The position numbers were made by a program, and so were the translations under genes. From positions 62,001 to 126,000 of the forward strand of contig MU008162.1 of NCBI GenBank assembly GCA_010909165.1: DNA of 64,000 nucleotides, in the 5' to 3' direction. This DNA is from Anthoceros angustus. Taxonomy: Eukaryota; Plantae; Anthocerotophyta. The notes below the pieces were generated by a model. That model made no database searches and was not told the origin of the DNA. It saw only the letters and a program-made list of their open reading frames with translations. Positions 3,452 to 59,100 of the stretch are shown here, in pieces. Numbering within the stretch: position 1 is the stretch's first letter; each line of letters begins with the position of its first letter.

Positions 3452-3904
3452 CGAATGAAGCGCGTGATAGTCAAGCTTAATATTACCGTGACCATAAATT
3501 ATAGATAGAACAAAGGGTCTCGCGTTAGAACTCACAAGATAGGAAGGTACAAAAAGGGACCGTCACGCTTACGGCCAATCTTGTAAAAACCTTAAAGATC
3601 TCATATTATTTCATATATAAAACTACCAATTTATTTTACTATCCATTGATTTTATTTTTCCAAAATGAACCCACATGATCCAGATTTTTCCTTTTTAGTG
3701 AGACTTGGGTGACCATAAATATAGAGAATGCATACTATATATGTGTGTTGAGAATATAAATAAAGGACATACTATATATGTGTGCTATACTAGGCTATAT
3801 TTATGAATGCAAGTCGATATACATTGACGTTTTAAGCTTGCAAGCGCACAAGTTCCTTTTGATGTCTTAAGACCATGTGCCAAAGCCATAGCAGTTGTAT
3901 TAAG

Positions 3905-4795
3905 CAAACCTTGCATCACTCCACGCTTGTCCATTGGTGGCTTCTTCACGAGTTTCAGGCCATGGTTCTCCATGGGTAGCTTTTTCATTAGTTGCATCCC
4001 ATGGTTGTTCATCATTCCATGGTTGGTCATCCGTGGTTTCTTTATAAGTTGCACTCCATGGTTGTTCATCACTCCATGGTTGGTCATCCGTGGTTTCTTC
4101 ATAAGATGCACTCCATGGTTGTTCATATGTGGCTTCTTCATAAGTCTCACTCCACTCCGCTGCGTCGGATTGGTTATCAATTTCACTCACCAATACATCT
4201 TCCCTATGGTTGCCTTCCATCTTGAATCAAGGTAGACCGTAAACACTAAATAAGATTATGAAAAGAAGGTAAGCATGCGCAGCCTCCTCAAGGTGCTGCT
4301 CTTTGCTTCTCTTGGATACTACAAGAGAGGGAACTTGACGATCTATGCCTTTGTCGCGCCGTGTGCCTCTGAAGACAATGACGCATGGGAAGAAGCTTAT
4401 GTGCAAGGTGATGAAGACAACTTCGCACATGTAACTTATGAAGGTCGATGGCCATCGCATTCCACGTATACGTCTATGCAATCTTATTATGGAAATTTGC
4501 ATGATGCAAAGGTTGAGGCACTAAGGATGGACAAGTGGCTTCAATCTGACAAAGTGGAGTGGAGTGAGACTTATGAAGAAGCCACACACGAACAAGAGTG
4601 GGACACAACTTGTGAAGAAGCCACCCATGAACAACCATGGCGTGAGGCTTGTGAAGAAACCATGAATGAGCAACCATGGAGTGATGAACAACCATGGAGT
4701 GCAACTTATGAAGAAGCTACCCATGGAGAATCATGGCTTGAAACTCGTGAAGAAGCGACCAATGAACAACCGTGGAGTGACGCGCAAGCCTACGA
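3905..4795. repeat. Inverted repeat (arms ~3905-4175 and ~4545-4795), each arm a 39-bp minisatellite encoding EEAT(H/Y)EQPWSATY
   Basis: ORFs 3900..4220(-) and 4275..4844(+) encode nearly the same acidic Trp-containing repeat (EWSETYEEAT..EQPWSDEQPWSATY..ETREEATN..WSDA) in opposite orientations. Confidence 0.85.
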
Positions 4796-5398
4796 AGACA
4801 ACCATAAATATGATGAAGGATCGGACAACAAAAAATCACGTTGAACTCTTTGAAAATCCAAGCAAACGAAATGCAACTGGATAAGGTGTCTCTGTCGCAT
4901 TGTCTTCCTCCGGATGTCAGGAAGATGTTTACTTCAAACCAAGGATAACTAGAATTGTAGTGTAGGATAACTCCGGTTGTACTATCAAAGAGATTATCCA
5001 TCATGTTCGGTTGTCCGATACTTCAATCATATTTACAGTTGTTTTATTAGGAGCAAGTAGATGAGATTGAGGTTAGAGCAAATTCAATCATAGGTGTTTC
5101 AAGCAAAAATCTTTTGATCAAATGTTATTCGAAATGGCGCAAGGTGTATCGTATGTAAATGGTTCGAGAGGAAAATCTACGGTCACGGTGCGATGAAAAC
5201 GAAACGGCGGATTGTATCCAGCGTTTATGTACGACCATCCCAAGAAACTTTCGGTCGGAACCCGGCCGCGTTCAGTACCTCAAGTGTCTTATGCGATTGT
5301 TGGTCTGACGCTGTGAACTCGCGGGACAGGAGTGAACCATGGAAGGAATGATTCATTATGCCGCAACCTGATTGGCCCCACAGGATTACCGTCAGTGC

Positions 5399-5441
5399 AT
5401 GAACCTGGCCGCTGCGGGATTGTGGAAGGCAACGTATATAC
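5399..5441 (+). promoter_or_regulatory. Lhcb core promoter: EIN3/EIL3-type site ATGAACCT (5399-5406) and TATA-like TATATA (~5435-5440)
   Basis: Exact match to the AYGWAYCT consensus ~30 bp upstream of TATATA, which lies ~105 bp before the ATG at 5546. Function untested. Confidence 0.4.
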
Positions 5442-5545: not shown

Positions 5546-6965
5546 ATGACGGCCGTTTCAGCCTCCATCAGCAGCTCCACCTTCGCGGGTCAGTCCGTGC
5601 TCAAGGGCGTCAGCGAGCTTTCCAGGAAGGTTAATGGCGGCAATACCGTGGAGTCAAGGATCACCATGAGGAGGACAGCCAGCTCCAAGCCTGACAGCAT
5701 CTGGTAGCCGTGCTTTCGTGCTCCTCTATTTGCTGCAGTTGTGCATTGCAGTGCAGTTATCCTCCTCATTTATTCTAAGAGCTCCTTGACTCCGCGCAAT
5801 GGATTCTCTACTTTGCTGACATTCGTTCTACATTTCTAAGTGCTTGTGTGCCTCCTTGCTATGGATTCCCTCTTTCCTTACACTCTTTCTTGCTAAATGC
5901 CTTTTGCCCGGATGCACTCTGCAATGAATTCTCCTTGTCTGTGTCCGAGACTTTATTCAAGTGCTCGTCTCCTCAATGCACGGCATTTCGTGCCTCTCAG
6001 CGGGAACCTTGGATAGAAGTTTTCTTGGATTCAAGCATCGAGTTATGTTTATTCTTGGATGCATTGATCTTGATTTTATAGCTAACTTGTTCCTGCATGC
6101 TCTCTGCAATGACCTCTTATCTTCTCTCCTTGTCTGCGTCAAACTCTATTCAAGACTAGTGCTCTTCTCCCCATTTGTGCATTTGTCATCCCTCTCATCT
6201 GGAACTTTGGATAGAAGTTTTCTTGGATGCTAGCGTCGAGCTTATGTTTGTTCTGAGATGCTTGGTTTGATGCAGTGTGATCTAAATCAAGAAACACGGA
6301 TTGTGCTGCGTAGGTACGGTCCAGACAGGCCCAAGTACCTGGGCCCGTTCTCCGGCGAGCCCCCGAGCTATCTGAAGGGAGAGTTCCCCGGCGACTACGG
6401 CTGGGACACCGCCGGTCTGTCGGCAGACCCCGAGACCTTCGCCAGGAACAGGGAGCTGGAGGTGATCCACTCCCGCTGGGCACTCTTGGGAACACTGGGA
6501 ATCGTGACTCCTGAGATTCTGGCACTCAACGGGGTGCCGATCCAGGAGCCAGTGTGGTTCAAGGCTGGCGCTGTCATCTTCTCCGAGGAGGGGCTAAACT
6601 ACCTGGGCAACCCGGCTTTGATTCACGCACAGAGCATTCTGGCGGTGCTGGCTGCCCAGGTGATCCTCATCGGCGCAGTGGAGGGTTACCGCATTGCAGG
6701 TGGTCCCTTGGGCGAGGTGACAGACCCTCTGTACCCCGGAGGTGCATTCGATCCTCTGGGCCTGGCCGACGACCCCGATGTCTTCGCCGATCTGAAGGTG
6801 AAGGAGATCAAGAACGGCAGGCTGGCGCAGTTTTCTGCTTTCGGATTCTTTGTCCAGGCCATTGTGACTGGCAAGGGCCCCATCGAGAACCTGCTCGACC
6901 ATCTTGCTGACCCCGCCAACAACAATGCCTGGGCCTACGCTACCAAGTTCGTGCCCGGGAACTAG
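5546..6965 (+). CDS. Lhcb: Major light-harvesting chlorophyll a/b-binding protein of PSII (Lhcb2/LhcbM-like); exons 5546-5703 and 6314-6965; 269 aa
   Basis: Transit peptide ending RITM|RRT; motifs [57 protein letters not shown]. The GT-AG intron splits the Trp codon of SIW-YG, as in Lhcb2. Confidence 0.97.
5915..6275. repeat. Imperfect ~190-bp tandem duplication inside the Lhcb intron
   Basis: 'ctctgcaatga...ggaacYttggatagaagttttcttggat...' occurs at ~5918-6070 and ~6100-6270. Confidence 0.75.
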
Positions 6966-9389
6966 ATAATTCCGTCCACATCCTGTAGGAAGGCTGCTGG
7001 AATGTGCTCAACTGGAAGCAAATCAAGCAGCTCGTGAACCAGGCCAGACAAGGCCTGAGCTTGTAACATGGACTGAGCTTGTAGTTTAACTCAGTCCCTT
7101 CTGTACAGTATGTCTCGACAGTTGAGTAATGTACACAGCCTGTTTGTGATTTGGATGATCAAGCTCACACTTCAAAAGTTGTGTTTTCCGTCGACACAAC
7201 TTTTGAAGCAATGGCTCTCTCATTTTGTCCATCTATTTCTCTGTCCTCAGCTTTGCGTTTCCGTATATACATGCCTCTGGGCGCTTGGAGCCAAGCACAC
7301 AAAGTCGATCTTCTCTTTCCGTGCTTTAATCGCTATGAGAGCATCAACAGCTACACGCCAGGCAAAATTTAGCTCTCTTCTCGACGTTTCCCCGCAAGCC
7401 TTTACCATTTCCCCCTTCTTTTTCTTTTCCCGCTGATGCACCACGAGATACAGAGCTGATGCTTCCCTCACAGAGCTGATGCTTCCCTCATGATTAGCTT
7501 TTTCTTCCTTGTTCTCTCGCCATAATGGGGACCCCATACAATTCCTGCAACAGACGTGACGCCGGACTTGTGACATGGTATGTGGACAGCTTGCAACTCA
7601 AAACTCTCTTACTCACATTCCTGTAATTCCTTGTGATGCTGCCATTCCTCAAGTGGACAGTACTTTTGACTAAGATCTTCATGCTCCGGATGTTTTGAAG
7701 TGGGAGGATCTACTTATGGAGTACTCTCAGAAGGCATTTGCTGTTCTCCACAAAACAGAATTAAGCATTGAGCAAAGAATCCAACAATTTGAAGAGCTCT
7801 ACGCATACCTGCAACGTTCGGAAGCCCTTGCAAGGAGATGAAAAGGAACAGGCCAATCGCAGAAGCAGCATACAAAAGTGTAACGACGGAGCTCTGGCGT
7901 GACGAATTCAAGAAATCAAACCTTCTAAACAATCCATTCCGTGTCTGACGAGGTCAAATATTTGCCCCACTGGAGACCGGGATATGTGCGGCATCTGACG
8001 CCTGCACCTTGATTCAGTCCCGGCATCCATGAAGTGCGGCCTTGTATCCGCACGCAAGTCCGCAGGCACTCCGTTAACGTAGTGTTGAAGGGAAAAATCC
8101 AGCAAGCATCAATCTCAAATGGCATGAACCGACATTGCAGCATAGCTGACTGCCAGGCCCACACATACGTTTAATCCACTCTTGTCTGCATCAACAGCTT
8201 TGTAGCTTAGATCGGCAAGCTTCAGAATTTTCTTCCAGTTGTCGTCGGATGCGTTCGTCGTGGTCTTTAGTCACTTCCAGACAAATAGATCTGTCTGCTA
8301 GCATCTTTGGTGGCAAGCCACTCATTGGATGCCATACCAAGAGTGCAACTGACAGCGACATCACTCGTCAGATATCGCAAGCGTTGCTGAACAGAAAACA
8401 AATGCATTGAGGACCTACTTCGGATTGAAGGCGGCTTTCAGAGCTATTTCGAAAGCTGAAATTCGAACTCCTCAGGATTATCAGGAGCCAGCTTCGGTTT
8501 CTCGTTTTCTGGAGTTGTGATAATTGGAACCTCCCAGGAATAGCTAGGCAAAAACGAATCCACAATCTGCGACAAACCGAATTTGTTGAAATTGAAGGCC
8601 AAGCGCCTTCGCTTTCTCCAGAGACTGAATCTGATGCTTCACTCACTCTCTCACTCAACACTCACCTCTGGATTTTGAATGACGAGGAAGTTGTCCCCGT
8701 CCATATCACCTCCTGCCATTTCATCCACAACAGAGCGTGGGCCCTTGGTTGAGAAGAAAATCCCATACCGACCTTTTCCGATGATGCCCAGCAAGCCTTC
8801 AGGATACACAGCTTGAAAGACATGTGGATCCCCGTTATGAAGGCCTGGGTACCTGTAGACTATCACCCTTTCCAAACAGATGGGGTTCTCCCTGTAGGAG
8901 CAGCGTCAGCATGTTCTAAGCTGAGTGCAATTAACAGAGATGACATGATAACTCACAGCACAATTGCCACTTGGTCTCGCTCAAGCAGTCCCGTGGGATC
9001 TGGGCATCCCTTCAGCATATAGCTGCCTGGAAGTGGGACTTTGCACTTGAGGTAGGACTTCAGCTGTCCTCTCACCAGTTCACGAAGTACTTTCTGTATG
9101 AACGGAGTTTTCACATCCATATCGCAAGATACCATCTTCCATGCATCCATCACATCGGGCCTGGTATCAAGGTTCTCCTGCAGGACTGCCAAGGAATTAC
9201 ACGAGGTCAGAATTCTTCAGGGTCTATGAAGAGTATTCTTTAAAGTAGTAGTCCTTACTCTGCCAAGCAGCCTGCCTAACCTGGGTACACGCAGTGGCTT
9301 TCTTCAACGCGTCTTTGGCCACACTTGTCATGGTCTCGGTGGGGACGCTCCCTTCAGAGAGCAGCAGTACAAGTGTCTGAGACGGCCTC

Positions 9390-9647: not shown

Positions 9648-12600
9648 CTAAGTACTATAGCTGATTTCTGAGACTTTTCTTAGTCCCATATTTCTCATGT
9701 GTTCTTGATGCTTGACGGAGCTGAGTGCCTTCGTAAGCACGTCGGCCGTCATTTGTTCTGTCGGGCAATAAAGAACTATAAACTTGCCTTCATCGACCAC
9801 TTGCCTTATAAAATGGAATTGTACCTCCACGTGCTTTGTTCGTGCATGGAACTTCGGGTTGTAGGTAAGGGCGATAGCACTTTGATTGTCGCAATAAAGT
9901 GGCTTAGGGATCCTTTGTGTTTCACCTAACTCTGAGAGTTGGAGGAGTTGCCAAAGTCCGTCCTTACATGCGTGAGTTAGTGAGCAATATTCAGCCTCTG
10001 TTGAGCTGAGTGCGACAACTTGCTGTCGCTTGCTACTCCAGCTTGTTGCCGTCCCTCCAAGTAAGTATACATAACTACTTGTACTCTTTCTATCATCAAT
10101 ATTGCCGGCCCAGTCGGCATCGCTAAAACCTTCTAGTTGTAGAGGCTCTTCTTGCTTGATATGTGATTGGTAAAGTAACCCTAAGTCCAAGGTTGCCCTT
10201 AGGTATCGAAATACCCTCTTGACTGCTTTCCAACGAGCTTGAGTAGGAGCTGATAAAAATTGAGATAAAGCTCCCACTGTATAGGAGAGATCTGGTCTAG
10301 TGCATACCATAAGATACATAAGACTACCTACGGCTGAAGAGTAAGGAGGAGGAGTAGTATCAGAGGTGTTATCCTGTTGGTCCGGTTCCTTGCTAAGTTT
10401 GAGGTTCATTTCCATAGGCGTAGAGATAGGTTTAGCATCTAACATGTTAAACTTGGTTAAGATCTCTTGAATGTATTTGGATTGATGAATAAGAATACTT
10501 CTAGCATTTCTATCCCTTAGAACCTGAATGCCTAAACAAAAGGAAAGTTCTCTACAAGTGGTCATAGAGAAACGCTTAGCTAGCATAGATCTGGTATTTT
10601 CTAATATTGCCTTAGTGTTAGACATAAGAACTATGTCGTCTACATATACTCCTAAAACAATGAATTCGGTACCTGATCTTTTGATATAGATGTTGCTATC
10701 TGAGTTTAGCCTAGTGAACCCTAGTTCCTTAAGGCTAACATCTAACTTATAATACCATTTCATGGCACTTTGCTTGAGTCCATATAAGGATTTGAGTAAT
10801 AAGCAGGCATTGTATTTTCTCCTATCCTGCACATGTATCCCTTCGGGGATGTCCGTATAAATAGTGTGGTCAAGGTCTCCATACAAGAAAGCCGTCTTGA
10901 TATCAAGTTGCATTAGCTCATAGTCATGGTGAGATGCTAAGGCTAAGAGGATCCTTAGTGAGGTTATTTTGAGTACGGGACTAAAGGTTTCGTCGTAGTC
11001 GAAACCATATTTTTGTGAATATCCCTTAGCTACAAGTCTCGCCTTATACCTTTCTATACTTCCGTCAGCATTTAATTTGATCTTAAATGTCCATTTAGAG
11101 CCTACTAGTTTTCTATCCTTAGGTAGGGAAGTTAAAGTCCAAGTCTTGTTAGCTTCTAGGGATTCTAGTTCTGACCTGATTGCTTGCTTCCAGTGTGCTT
11201 TTTGTGGGCAGGTGATGGCCTCCTGGTAGTTGGCAGGGACGAACTGATCTATAGCTGCATTAAGACAATATGCTATATTGCTCTTAGGATCCTGCCAGTT
11301 AGTAGGAGAGTATCTATTTATCTTACCTGCGTTAGAACGCTGAGAGTGCCTACGTCTAGGCTGGTTGGTGTCAGGTTGATGTTATGGGATGTTCTCATGT
11401 GTGCCCTCATGATACGGATCCGGAGTCTCGTTGACGCCTTGGGTGTTTATTGGTTGGATATCTGGATTATCATGATTAGGAAAATCAAAATATATATTTC
11501 TGCTTGCCTTTGGAGTGCCGGGATAAGGACCATAATTGTTGAGTCGATTATGTGGTCGAAAATCGGTGTTGCTCCCGATCCGGACGATCTGGTGTCGCGG
11601 CTGTGATCCGCGGGGCCACCCGCTGATCCTTGCCGGGATGATCCGGAGCCTCTTTGGGCGTCTGGGCGTGTAGCCGAGGCGGTCCGTGTTCACGCGCGCC
11701 GAATTGTGGGCCGCTCGTGCCACCGCCCGGATTCTGGCGCCGTTACGCGCGGTGAGCTCTCCCCATCTTTGGTGGCCGGGTGCGAACCTCCTTGGTGCGC
11801 TTTGTGGGGCGATGTGATGGAGGCCGCCGAGGGCGTCGTCCTCGTCGCTGACCATGCCGAACTCGCCTACCCCCCCCTTAGCTCAAGGCCCGGGGCCGCG
11901 GCGGAGGAGGTGAGGGGTGAGGTGGGTCGCATCATGAACATGATTGGTTGAGGTGTGTCCCAGTGAAATAGGGGCCGTGCGTGGGTGCGGTGTGGTGGAG
12001 GTGCGGGTTGGGGCTGAGGCGGGCTGGGTTGTGGTTGTGGTGGGATCCGGCCAGGGACGGAGAAATCCACGGAACCATCCTCGTCGTCGCTGTCTACAGG
12101 TTGTGAAGCTCCCAGGTCATGGTCGACATATCCTCAAGAAATGTGACATCGCGAGAATGAGTCACCTTGTGGGTTTGAGGGTGTATAATTTTGTAGCCTT
12201 TGATGCCGTCGGTGAAGCCGAGGAACAGGAACTTCTGGGCCTTATTGTCGAGTTTTGTCCTGAGAGCCTTGGGAATGTGGGCATACACAGGAGCTCCGAA
12301 TATCCGTAATGAGGATAAATCGCTTGTTACTGTCGGGCTTCGTATGGGGTGCCACGAGAGGGACAAGGTTAGTGTTCTCGTTGTCATGTAAACAGGTCGC
12401 ATTCGCCATGAGGATTTAGGTAATCGGGCGTGGATGAGCATGGCTAGTCCAGCTTTGTATAGTTCTGTTCATCCATTCTGCGACCCGTTACGAGAGGTGT
12501 GTGGGGTGGTAATCTGTCTGTTGATGCCGTGTTCCTTGCAGAAGTTGGAAAATTGAGTGGAGCCATATTCACCACCTCCATCGGATCTGAGGCAAAGTAA

Positions 12601-13400: not shown

Positions 13401-15975
13401 TTGAGGGTCGTGGTCAATGTGAGCGAGGAAAGCCTTAGAGTGCCTCTGCATGGTTAAGGCCAGTTGGCCAGAATGCTGATTTCTGTAATTGTTAGAAGAT
13501 CCTAACCGCTTACGGCATTCTTCATATGTGTGTCCAGGTATTTTACAATACCCGCAAATTGGCTTCCATGATGGGTTGAAATTGCCTCTGCCGCGGCTGG
13601 GGAATGTACCCCGTCCTCTATTTGTGCCGCGTGGTGCCTCGGAAGGAGCCTCTTCCACGACCTCTGTTCCGCCCTCGTCCTGTGAAGAAAGCACTGCTGG
13701 AGGAGGGCTCCCCAGCTTGAGCAAATACTTTCCGACGGCCTTCCTCTGTAAGCATGGCACTTAAAACCTTGTTGGTGAGGGGTTGAATTCCTGCTCATCG
13801 ACCGACCCACGATTCCTAGAATGTGGATAGCAAATTGCGGCTAGGAGCTCCTCAGGGATGTTGAATCCAAGGGCCTGGAATTTCACGGTCCAGCCTCGAA
13901 ACACCATTGCGTGGTGGTCCACATGGTCGCCCTCTGCCATGCGAAGACTGAGGTAGCTCTTGATAGTGTGTATGGTGTGCATGATGTCATGGGCGTCGTA
14001 GATTTCGTGCAGCTGTTGCCATGCCTCGGCTGCTGTGGCTGTCCCCTCCAGCTGCTGCACGGTGCCTTGCTTCATGCTTTGCATGAGAACATTTTTGGCT
14101 TGTTGGTTGTAGTCCTCCCATTCTTCTTTCTCCTTCTGTGTGCCAACTGCAGGGCAAGCTATGGGGGCTGGGGGTGTGCCAACCCCACCAACGTAGCCCC
14201 ATAGCTTTCGCTCTTTAAGGATATTGGTGATCCGAAATTTCCAAGTGGGGAAATTATGTTGCTGGCCGTCAAACTTGTCCTCCTTGGGCGAGATAAGCGA
14301 GGGAGGCTACAAGAGAGGTGTGCTAGCAAGTTGAGGGTCGTGGTCAATGTGAGCGAGGAAAGCCTTAGAGTGCCTCTGCATGGTTAAGACCAGTTGGCCA
14401 GAATGCTGATTTCTGTAATTGTTAGAAGATCCTAACTGCTTACGGCATTCTTCATATGTGTGTCCAGGTATTTTACAATACCCGCAAATTGGCTTCCATG
14501 ATGGGTTGAAATTGCCTCTGGTGGGAATGTACCGTCCTCTATTTGTGCAGCGTGGTGCCTCGGAAGGAGCCTCTTCCACGACCTCTGTTCGCCCTCTCAC
14601 CTGTGAAAGCACTGGAGGAGGGCTCCCGCTGAGCAAATACTTTCCGACGGCCTTCCTCTGTAAGCATGGCACTTAAAACCTTGTTGACTGTGAGGGGTTG
14701 AATTCCCTGTAAGCTCTGTACGACACTGACCCACGATTCCGGTAATGTGGATAGCAAATTGCGGCTAGGAGCTCCTCAGGGATGTTGAATCCAAGGGCCT
14801 GGAATTTCACGGTCCAGCCTCGAAACACCATTGCGTGGTGGTCCACATGGTCGCCCTCTGCCATGCGAAGACTGAGGTAGCTCTTGATAGTGTGTATGGT
14901 GTGCATGATGTCATGGGCGTCGTAGATTTCGTCATTGTTGCCATGCCTCGGCTGGCTGTATCCCCTCAGTGCAGATTTGCCTTGCTTCATGCTTTGCATG
15001 AGAACATTTTTGGCTTGTTGGTTGTAGTCCTCCCATTCTTCTTTCTCCTTCTGGTGTTAATCATATGTTGGGAGGCTCGGTCAATATACGGCATGTTGTG
15101 TAAGCGAGGAGGCTACAAGAGGCAGGTGTGCTAGCAAGTTGAGGGTCGTGGTCAATGTGAGGAAAGCCTTAGAGTGCCTCTGCATGGTTAAGGCGATTGG
15201 CGAATGCTGATTTGTAATTGTTAGAAGATCCCTAATCTTACGGCATTCTTCATATGTGTGTCCGTATTTTACAATACCAAATTCATGATGGGTTGAAATT
15301 GCCTCTGCGGTGGGAATGTACCCGTCCTCTATTTGTGCAGCGTGGTGCCTCGGAAGGAGCCTCTTCCACGACCTCTGTTGCCTCGTCCTGAAGAAAAGCT
15401 TCTTTGGAGGAGGGCTCCCGCTGAGCAAATACTTTCCGACCTTCCTCTGTAAGCATGGCACTTAAAACCTTGTTGGTGAGGGGTTGAATTCCTGTAAGCT
15501 CACTCTGCCCACGATTCCGGTAATGTGGATAGCGTGCGGCTAGGAGCTCCTCGGGGATGTTGAATCCAAGGGCCTGGAATTTCACGGTCCACCTCGAAAC
15601 ACCATTGCGTGGTGGTCACATGGTCGCCCTCTGCACGAGGCGGAGTAGCTCTTGATAGTGTGTATGGTGTGCATGATGTCATGGGCGTCGTAGATTTCGT
15701 CATTGTTGCCATGCACCTCACTGTTGTCCCCTCAATTTCTTTGCGGTGCCTTGCTTCATGCTTTGCATGAGAACATTTTAACTTGTTGGTTGTAGTCCTC
15801 CCATTCTTCTTTCTCCTTACGTGCCTTAGCTGAGGGCAGCTATGGTGGGGTGTGCCAACCCCACCAACGAGCCCCATAGCTTCCTTTAAGGATATTGGTG
15901 ATCCGAAATTTCTGGGAAATTATGTTGCTGTCACAAACTTGTCCTCCTTGGACAGGGAGAGGTGGAGGTTGACAT
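13300..15975 (-). repeat. Copia gag present as three tandem indel-rich copies (~13300-14300, ~14300-15055, ~15055-15975)
   Basis: The peptides EIYDAHDIMHTIHTIK, EEAPSEAPR and the zinc knuckle CGYCKIPGHTYEEC recur three times. Confidence 0.88.
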
Positions 15976-16095
15976 CTTGTGTATGTTTAGTCTCTAAACG
16001 CTAAATACTGTGTTTCTGAGTAGGGTAGATATTTCTATCTGCATGGTGATCAGGACTCTATATGTTCTTTGAGGCAATTTAATGTGTGCGTGTGG

Positions 16096-16532
16096 TTAGT
16101 CCAGCTTTGTTAATTTCTCTATCACGGAATTGTGGAGGTTTGTGATTTCTTCAGCAGGTGGGAGCGTGAAGAAACCGTGCTGGCGACTTAAGGACCCTAA
16201 GGAGGATGTGACCTGTTCCTTGACGGCTGCGTGAGAGATAGGAGCGATTACGTCCAGTGTGGAGCAGATTTCTCTTTTCATGGTTGCTGAAAGAGAAAGG
16301 AAACCTGGATATAGGACAGGTCATATTCTGTGCGGTCAAGGTATCCCCTTAACAGCAATTCTTCCCCTATTAGAAGCAGGATGCCAGAAACTCTAGTCCA
16401 TGCGTAGATTAGTACATCTTCATGAGCCTCTCTTAAGAATCTTTGTTCTCTATGGAATCGTAGAGATTCCAAAATCTGGGCATCCCTATTTGCCCGTTTG
16501 AGTTGGCGTTGCTTTTTCTTAGAACCTGGCAT
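16096..16532 (-). CDS. Extra ORF pair in the copia 5' leader (84 aa + 61 aa, overlapping at ATGA); unknown function
   Basis: Lies between the PBS (16593) and the gag ATG (~15975). Basic N-terminus MPGSKKKQRQLKR. The stop of ORF1 overlaps the start of ORF2 at 16278-16281. Confidence 0.45.
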
Positions 16533-56147: not shown

Positions 56148-59100
56148 ATGGCCAGCCTCGTCCCCAACCATGTGTTTGGCCTGAAGGGGGGCCTGAAGGA
56201 TTCGGTGCAGTTTGTGGACGACACCACGTACGTCTACGTCGCAGGGCACCATGTGGTGCTGGTGAACACGGAGCTGAAGCACCAGAAGGTGATATCGGGC
56301 AGCCCGGACACGGACGGGATCACGGCCATCGCGGTCAGCCCCAGCAAGAGATATGTGGCAGTTGCGGAGAGGTGTCCGCTGTCGCAGGTGGGGGTGCTGA
56401 GCCCGCGGCCCGGGGACCTGGCCCCCCGGGGCTCGGTGAGCGCGGAGCCCAGGGGGTCGCTGATCGATGCCAGAGGCTCTCTTGTAGGGCAAGATGGCAA
56501 GCCCCTGGCCGCCGCCGCGGGGGACGGGAAGCCGGCCGTGCTGGATGTTAAGGGACCCATTATCTCCATCTACGAGGCCTCCACGCTGAAGAAGCGGCGG
56601 GTTCTGTCCGGCAGCGAGGTGTTGCAGGGCACCAGGGAGTATTCTTCCATCTGCTTCAGCGCGGATGGGAAGACCATCGCGGCCCAGGGCGGGCCGCCTG
56701 ATTACCACCTGGTCATCTGGAGCTTGGAGAAGCTCAAGGTTCTGGCCTCCTGTAAGTCCTCCTCAGGAATGGCCAGCATCGACCAGGTGGGTATTCTTAA
56801 TGCTTCCGCGCTGTGAGCAGAGGCTGCATGCTTGGCCTGGAAACCGAATTCTGACACCAACCCATCTGCTCTTTTGTTAGATATTGTACTGCCCCGAGGA
56901 TTCGTCTCACATCACGGTTGTGGGCAAAGAGTTTGCCAAGGCGTTTCGATCCACGGACCTGTCGCTCAGGCAAATAGCTAATGCCTTGGCTAAGCGAGAT
57001 GGGCAAAGGTTTCCCTGCCATGTGTGGTTGTGCGAGCCCAGGGACCCCGAGGATGAAGAGGCCCCAGAGAAAAAAGAGGGCCAACTGTCTGGCTGCCTAT
57101 ATTCGTGCGAAACCGGAGAGCTGCTCTACGTTGAAGGTGGGGAGGTACGTCTACCTTTGATCTGCACTTAAAAAATCCTCAAACAACACAAAAGGCCACA
57201 CTTTCTACAAGCAATCCCAGAAGTCTTCATCCTCATACTTTTAAAAACTTCGGTCCCACACAAGAAAACAGGAAAACACTAGTTGCATAAGGAAAAACTG
57301 AAGTCTAAAGTCTTTAGAGTCCAACCTACAGTGCAGCCCAAGAAACACTAGAAAGGTTGAAAGGTTGAAGTCTTTAGAGAAGGTTGAAGTCTTTAGAGAA
57401 GGTTGAAGTCTTTAGAGAATATTGAACTCTTTAGAGTTGAATTTAGGATGAGAAAGCTTGAATTTCTATAGGTACTTCATACCATCTTGCTCTTTCATAG
57501 TTCATCCTCATTTAAAGTTATAAAAAGTATTTTTGATTAAAAAAACTTAAATTTATTATATTATGATAATCTTATCACATAATTTTATTTTGTACCATTT
57601 ATGGAGAAGATATCATGGTGAGATGCAATGCTCTTATATCCAACTATTCTTGTTCTTCATAGATTGTATGTACAATACCAACGGGTAGCAATAAAGAACC
57701 AGGACCAGTAGTCGAGATCATTATTCTTTATTCGAAAGGTTTCTTATGTGGTGAACAAGGAGGAAATATTTCAATGTGGGAAAGAGTTGAAGAACCTGAG
57801 ATGAAAGAAGGGTTTAGGAAGAACAGGTCATTCAAGGTGGATTCCACCAATGCTAAAATATGTAGCATGGCAATATCGCCTAACGAAGACATGCTCATAT
57901 GTGCACTGGATAATAATCAACTCATCACAATACCCTTTCAAAATGAGTTTTTGTTCAAAGAAAATGAAGTTCCAAAGGACATTCTTATTCAGGTATATGA
58001 AACTGAATATTATTTTGCGATAACTCTCTGAGTTTACTTATGTACTGCAAAATAAATAGGATATGGAGTGAAACCATTTCATTTTTATTTTTATAGCAAG
58101 GATCTTTACTCATAATCCATAATCGAACCATTTCATCTTGCTTGCAGCCGTTCCATTTTCAGACAATAACAGGCATGGATGCTTGTTTGCGAAAACCAAT
58201 AGTTGTAACATGTAGTACAGATAAAAGTATTCGCATATGGAATTATGTTGAAAAACGATGCGAGCTATGCAAGTTCTTTCCTGAAGAAGCTTATTCCATA
58301 TCATTGCATCCAAGTGGTTGGTATTTTATATCTTATAATTTTCAAATATTACTCAATAAAATATACTAATTATGTATAGCCTTTTTCCACTTGATGTGCA
58401 GGTCTTCATATTTTAGTTGGGTTCTTTGACAAGCTAAGGTTAATGAATCTTCTAATCGATGATATAAAAATGGTTCGAGAGCTAAGCATCAAAGCTTGTC
58501 ATGAATCAACTTTTAGCAATGGTGGACAGTATTTTGCAGCAGTAAATAGCAATGCTATCCAAATATTTTCTACATATTCATGTGAGAATATTGGAAACCT
58601 ACGAGGGCATGGTGGCAAGGTACATTACTCGATCCAGTTCCAACCTTTGAAAACTTACCAAATGTTGTGGCAGTTCCAACACATGCTGTGCCTCTGCACC
58701 TCATATACTCACTTTGAAATTATTATTATTATTGAGTCAAAATCATAATATTTTCAGGTTCGTACTATTTGGTGGTCAGCAGATGATTCTACAATGGTGA
58801 CTGCCGGTGTAGATGGAGCAATTTATGAATGGAGAGTGAAGGACTATAAAAGAATAAGAGAAAATGTGATTAAAGGAACTGTATATACAGGAGTAGTCGG
58901 CCTAGTTGACTGTAAGTCATTTTTCGCAGTTGGATCCGATAAAAAGCTGAAGGAAGTTGATGAAAATCAAGTGCTTAAGGTACAACCTTTATTTATTGCA
59001 TCACGAATCTTGCAAAGATGAATATTTGCTCCTTCATGACCTTCGTTACACCCTAACAGGAATACAATAGCAATGTGTTGTTGACCCAAATTGCTCTCCC

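Follow-up and report, generated by a model that had tools for sequence, protein, structure and literature searches.

A sulfur-free major LHCII protein of the hornwort Anthoceros angustus: a candidate sulfur-sparing antenna isoform from an old bryophyte clade

By every sequence feature examined, the gene at positions 5546–6965 of the window (the whole 64,000-nucleotide stretch of DNA analysed here) is a member of the major LHCII, and its mature chain of 228 residues contains neither Met nor Cys, a claim of the preliminary description that was confirmed by an exon-wise residue count. Judged from its relatives, the gene is part of an old clade common at least to hornworts and liverworts. It probably encodes a functional, conditionally used, sulfur-sparing isoform of the major LHCII, similar to LHCBM9 of Chlamydomonas.

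The gene lies on the forward strand and consists of two exons. Exon 1 (5546–5703) encodes the predicted transit peptide (5546–5668) and the N-terminus of the mature chain, which starts with RRT, is basic and carries a phosphorylatable Thr as read from the sequence only; its product resembles the corresponding part of the orthologs from Nothoceros and liverworts. Both Met residues of this exon (Met1 and Met41) precede the cleavage site, which is inferred from the RxTM/RR motif. An intron of 610 nt (5704–6313, GT..AG) splits the Trp codon of the WYGPDR motif, and exon 2 (6314–6965) encodes the LHCII core of 216 residues, with 0 Met and 0 Cys, at full length to the TAG stop codon (6963–6965); the splice sites and the frame are intact, as originally described. 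Calypogeia, Riccia, and both Sphagnum paralogs have an intron at this very position, and spliced Sphagnum contigs join at the hornwort intron point. Within the hornwort intron, the segment 5790–6250 contains a degenerate tandem duplication of ~190 nt (spacing, about 185–198 nt).

Searches and trees were run with exon 2, not with the joined protein. Exon 2 matched solved LHCII chains over residues 1–216 (E values, 4e-124 to 1e-115), and the chlorophyll a/b-binding domain (PF00504) is present on the 93% identical Nothoceros ortholog. The trimerisation determinants WYGPDR and Trp222 are both present. Because the gene product shows 80–85% identity to canonical LHCII relatives, membership in Lhcb9 of Physcomitrium, a divergent moss Lhcb distinct from LhcbM1–13, appears unlikely. 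An AlphaFold model built from the exon-2 alignment had a pLDDT of 39 and was given no weight.

No LHC copy other than the 5546–6965 gene was found within the 64-kb window. At 3900–4844, two inverted array copies (87% identity over 157 nt, with 39/57-nt units) each contain an open frame that has no Pfam match and abounds in Glu, Trp, and Pro. On the minus strand at 8654–9192, two short frames match a plant-type RNA-dependent RNA polymerase (PF05183) and may be exons of an RDR gene or fragments of one; they are adjoined by a Copia-type reverse transcriptase frame (PF07727) at 9648–10913.

The five conserved sulfur residues of the major LHCII are each replaced in the hornwort protein. In spinach numbering, Met73 is substituted by Leu (codon CTC, 6483–6485), Cys79 by Ile (ATC, 6501–6503), Met135 by Ile (ATC, 6669–6671), Met188 by Gln (CAG, 6828–6830), and Met191 by Ala (GCT, 6837–6839), all on the forward strand and with the codons initially given for them. 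Canonical land-plant matches have Met or Cys at these positions in 86 of 86 cases and contain 5.9 sulfur residues on average; the chance of all five replacements is ~2e-10 in a naive estimate that takes the sites as independent. The view that each conserved sulfur residue had been replaced therefore stands for the five sites, but not for the WAC site (position 130), which is Cys in just 39 of the 86 canonical proteins. Similarly, it is true in general that most replacements need two or three base changes, except that ATG to ATC needs one. The ligands and ion pairs (E65, H68, R70, Q131, E139, R142, E180, N183, R185, Q197, and H212) are all kept, including every chlorophyll ligand named before.

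The gene is under strong purifying selection, with dN/dS of 0.06–0.09 in comparison with the sulfur-free genes of Calypogeia, Riccia, and Sphagnum (dS in these comparisons is 1.3–1.6, near saturation), in agreement with the earlier opinion that it is not decaying. The orthologs carry identical residues at the replaced sites, several with identical codons, so that a sequencing error, already doubted in the preliminary description, is excluded; together with the dN/dS values, the shared codons rule out both a sequencing artefact and a pseudogene.

The nearest protein is that of the hornwort Nothoceros aenigmaticus, known from a transcriptome, which is likewise sulfur-free. Further sulfur-free relatives were found in the liverwort Calypogeia fissa (two records) and three Sphagnum species and, among algae, in Mesotaenium endlicherianum, Coccomyxa species, and Myrmecia; M. 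endlicherianum has three LHCII paralogs (P0212, P0251, and P0252) with a sulfur-free core. In Riccia fluitans there are two copies, and each contains a single Met. These copies are convergent and near-identical (L002:10001–11068 and 15303–16367), and their Met73, in an otherwise sulfur-free chain, may represent either a reversion or an intermediate. The sulfur-free proteins coexist with sulfur-rich paralogs in Calypogeia (0 versus 8 sulfur residues), Sphagnum (0 versus 5–6), and Coccomyxa (0 versus 5). Seven bryophyte-like LHCII proteins have intermediate sulfur contents of 2–4 residues (P0126, P0020, P0055, P0134, P0135, P0140, and P0145), among which P0126 combines the canonical Met73/Cys79 with a Sphagnum sulfur-free backbone and may be chimeric or have arisen by conversion.

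In Sphagnum, a sulfur-rich LHCII gene is located ~3 kb upstream of the sulfur-free gene, in tandem (L003:5827–11426), a layout that is repeated in L009, L011, and L012. The dS between the tandem paralogs of L003 is 0.59, below that between the sulfur-free genes across lineages. Gene-conversion tracts between the tandem paralogs were looked for and none was seen, the identity being 75–90% throughout. The intron of the sulfur-free gene in Sphagnum jensenii (L003:10153–10775) has a GC donor (GC–AG), and in its precursor the usual Met at the cleavage site is replaced, leaving the initiator Met and one Cys. The Sphagnum orthologs also occur as intron-less full-length contigs in environmental assemblies, which indicates that they are transcribed and spliced. 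Among the best 120 matches per search, including a search with a sulfur-free profile, every named protein of a vascular plant had at least two sulfur residues, and no sulfur-free copy from Marchantia polymorpha or Physcomitrium was found; these searches suggest an absence of sulfur-free LHCII from vascular plants and from the latter two species. Neither sulfur-pathway neighbours nor shared synteny was detected in the four loci examined.

Trees were calculated with all Met/Cys columns dropped and drawn with midpoint rooting; LHCBM9 was not among the rows. With the sulfur columns dropped, the 5546–6965 gene groups with that of Nothoceros (support, 100/93), and the hornwort and liverwort sulfur-free genes form a single clade (98/90), which persists after a further two positions to the left and right of every sulfur site have been dropped; a grouping due solely to the sulfur sites is thereby ruled out. 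Canonical land-plant LHCII proteins, together with one protein from the zygnematophyte Netrium, form a separate group with a lower support of 90/95. A tree with an independent origin within liverworts was 39.8 log-likelihood units worse and was not formally rejected (AU p = 0.058). Forcing the Sphagnum sulfur-free genes into the hornwort–liverwort clade was not rejected (p = 0.45), nor was a single clade of all sulfur-free proteins, including those of algae, in the set without LHCBM9 (AU p = 0.155), the best trees requiring 4–6 state changes. It is well supported by these trees that the sulfur-free paralog predates the hornwort–liverwort split, and the residue-by-residue replacement within this lineage envisaged in the preliminary description is contradicted by the old clade.

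A 14-bp palindrome, formed by two overlapping EIL/TEBS-like half-sites, was found at 5393–5406 on the forward strand, 153 nt upstream of the ATG. Inside it, an exact 8-nt TEBS consensus (5399–5406; consensus from bioRxiv 10.1101/2021.03.30.437644) lies just upstream of a TATA-like box at 5435–5440, a consensus match only, which is ~30 nt downstream of the palindrome; both are also on the forward strand. Exact TEBS sites, which have a background of 0.22 per kb, are also present in the Sphagnum sulfur-free promoters, and those of liverworts are one base off. In a de novo survey of 12-mers (one mismatch allowed) common to the upstream 700 nt of the sulfur-free genes of the hornwort, Calypogeia, Riccia, and Sphagnum, six were found, and all six map to the single palindrome; shuffled sequences gave 0, none of 150 draws of real random tiles exceeded 2, and none was left when the Sphagnum sulfur-free promoter was swapped for that of its sulfur-rich neighbour. 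The held-out liverwort-like gene L015 carries the palindrome ~400 nt upstream, at one mismatch, in DNA that is not alignable to the upstream region of Calypogeia; 1 of 140 background tiles reaches this level. Canonical LHCII promoters (n = 35, redundant and mostly from angiosperms) contain the palindrome in no case at one mismatch or fewer and in two cases at two mismatches, and the Coccomyxa promoter is without it. The palindrome marks the sulfur-free genes, and its conservation from hornworts to mosses and lack in the adjacent sulfur-rich Sphagnum paralog point to a separate regulation. Within the set, the hornwort site matches least well, with two mismatches to the cross-species palindrome and P = 0.074 when taken alone. 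A second close match to the palindrome (one mismatch) is located at 58437–58450 of the window.

As to the factor that may bind this site, SLIM1 binds TEBS-type sites in sulfur-deficiency genes (PMC4206189), and a single EIL protein is present in Marchantia and in Anthoceros (PMC9136324). The palindrome differs by one mismatch from the 12-nt SLIM1 DAP-seq motif (P = 0.21 against shuffles) and by seven from the 20-nt UPE-box consensus, and matches to the UPE-box and SURE in the promoter are absent or at chance level. Ethylene-responsive EILs act through TEBS sites as well. The palindrome core is also an RY element, a site for B3/ABI3 factors; the conserved flanks extend past this core and match the TEBS ends. 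Control of the gene through the palindrome by a putative EIL/SLIM1-type factor is conceivable on these grounds, with the odds close to even and slightly against it.

In the proposed scheme, shortage of sulfate would cause an EIL/SLIM1-type transcription factor to bind to the palindrome and turn the gene on. The precursor would be imported, bind chlorophylls through the unchanged ligands, and trimerise, and the sulfur-free chain would replace the sulfur-rich LHCII as the latter turns over, with ~6 sulfur atoms freed per subunit of this thylakoid protein, the most abundant one, for use in cysteine, methionine, glutathione, and Fe–S. The sulfur-sparing reading put forward in the preliminary description gains from the sulfur-specific depletion, the coexisting sulfur-rich paralogs, the purifying selection, and the EIL-like palindrome, and loses the part that relied on residue swaps in a single lineage.

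The chief alternative is an antenna for stress or photoprotection, in which Met and Cys would have been removed as a protection against oxidation, lumenal changes such as Gln103Val would shift quenching, and the palindrome would answer to ABA, drying, ethylene, or submergence via ABI3 or an ethylene EIL. It is helped by the near-invariant lumenal Gln103, which is Val in the hornwort protein (6573–6575, forward strand) and in the Nothoceros and liverwort orthologs and which, we presume, pairs with Glu94 in quenching models. This substitution, together with the further non-sulfur changes Gly93Gln and Gly108Glu, is a hint at altered properties and counts against the sulfur-sparing reading; against the stress antenna, Gln103 is retained in the Sphagnum and algal sulfur-free proteins. 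The RY-like core of the palindrome also favours the stress antenna, but the conserved flanks exceed that core, and although LHCBM9 has also been proposed to quench PSII supercomplexes, the recombinant protein was not quenched in solution (PMC4344250). The composition of the chain argues for sulfur cost rather than oxidation, since side-chain nitrogen is not reduced (51 versus 49.8), Tyr and His counts are unchanged, and one Trp is missing, its site being occupied by Leu in algal sulfur-rich proteins too. Sulfur cost is further favoured because different lineages reach zero sulfur via different residues; helix A attains this state by QFSA/QFAA or by LVAN, with a different solution in Sphagnum than in the hornwort–liverwort clade, so that the shared trait is the absence of sulfur. 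The cut-off N-terminal part, mostly the transit peptide, is Met/Cys-poor as well (Met + Cys, 0.76 versus 1.59; p = 3e-5), which adds to the same preference, although lineage is a confounder here. Taken together, we regard the stress antenna as rather unlikely.

Two other explanations were weighed. The gene might lack a sulfur switch and be a sulfur-cheap paralog of constitutive, housekeeping or tissue-specific use, an LHCII of old algal type retained for steady life on nutrient-poor ground, as could be argued from Asn111, Leu128, Ala160, and Lys227, which the sulfur-free land proteins share with algae, from the Sphagnum transcripts in several environmental assemblies, and from the ordinary transcriptome in which the Nothoceros copy occurs. 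We consider this improbable: a palindrome kept from hornworts to mosses is missing next door in the sulfur-rich Sphagnum paralog, and the algal precedents are strictly conditional (PMC4724957). A transfer to an early bryophyte from a trebouxiophyte (Coccomyxa-like) alga, or contamination of the assembly with algal DNA, would account for the 83% identity to Coccomyxa viridis, whose helix-A motif is identical, and for the one-residue insertion near the N-terminus that liverwort copies share with algae. A recent transfer from Coccomyxa is disfavoured because the transit peptide is of the land-plant type, as is the single intron, compared with at least six exons in the Coccomyxa gene; with the gene also on the streptophyte side of the branch starred in the tree and its nearest relative a hornwort protein, recent transfer is largely refuted and algal origin by this route is barely credible. 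The sulfur-sparing isoform remains our preferred reading.

We found no report of a sulfur-free antenna in land plants, nor a literature precedent for a sulfur-free or sulfur-sparing land-plant LHCII (subscription journals being thinly covered), nor bryophyte sulfur-starvation data. Swapping of abundant proteins for sulfur-poor versions is known in microbes and green algae, and a land-plant antenna of this type would be new. Even under strong purifying selection, as this gene shows, an LHCII can lose all five conserved sulfur residues. More tentatively still than the control by an EIL/SLIM1-type factor, we propose an ancestral sulfur-sparing programme for abundant chloroplast proteins, based on EIL/SLIM1 and the palindrome, in which the sulfur-free LHCII would be older than the hornwort–liverwort split, perhaps than that between land plants and zygnematophytes, and would have been lost in vascular plants. 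The question is now testable in Anthoceros, Riccia, and Sphagnum under sulfate starvation, and the palindrome gives an entry point to the ancestral role of EIL in bryophytes, some of which have just one such protein.

A sulfur-depleted isoform of an abundant antenna protein for times of sulfur shortage is already represented by the cyanobacterial cpc3 phycocyanin, which has an unrelated fold and must retain its bilin-binding Cys. The hornwort protein agrees with the major LHCII (Lhcb1/Lhcb2 in seed plants, LhcbM in mosses; PF00504) in its ligands, WYGPDR, Trp222, RRT N-terminus, and intron position, and differs from it in having no Met/Cys in place of ~6, a promoter palindrome of its own, and a clade outside the canonical land-plant LHCII. 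LHCII copies have been described as grouping by species, with the exception of Lhcb3 (PMC2323573); unlike this pattern, the sulfur-free copies cluster across lineages, which makes the gene a second cross-lineage LHCII paralog besides Lhcb3. The putative regulatory site resembles the UPE-box of SLIM1 (EIL3) in its two overlapping, opposed TEBS-like half-sites (PMC4206189), and differs in that it is 14 bp long, has its half-sites in tighter overlap, and carries G in position 5. LHCB1 of Parachlorella kessleri (1779_t), which is up-regulated 2050- to 5106-fold without sulfur (PMC4724957), is a trebouxiophyte LHCII, likened here by description; other trebouxiophytes hold sulfur-free LHCII, and the Parachlorella protein, unlike that of the hornwort, is algal. 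A close parallel is LHCBM9 of Chlamydomonas, with 4 sulfur atoms versus 6–7 in its paralogs, induced without sulfur and proposed to be sulfur-sparing (PMC4344250). Both are sulfur-poor major LHCII proteins, with sulfur-rich paralogs beside LHCBM9 and beside the sulfur-free proteins of Calypogeia, Sphagnum, and Coccomyxa, whereas induction is a feature of LHCBM9, and the hornwort gene, from a land plant, encodes a mature chain with no sulfur at all. The mature chain of LHCBM9 keeps two Met residues that were proposed to be possibly essential (PMC4344250), a proposal against which the sulfur-free hornwort chain speaks.
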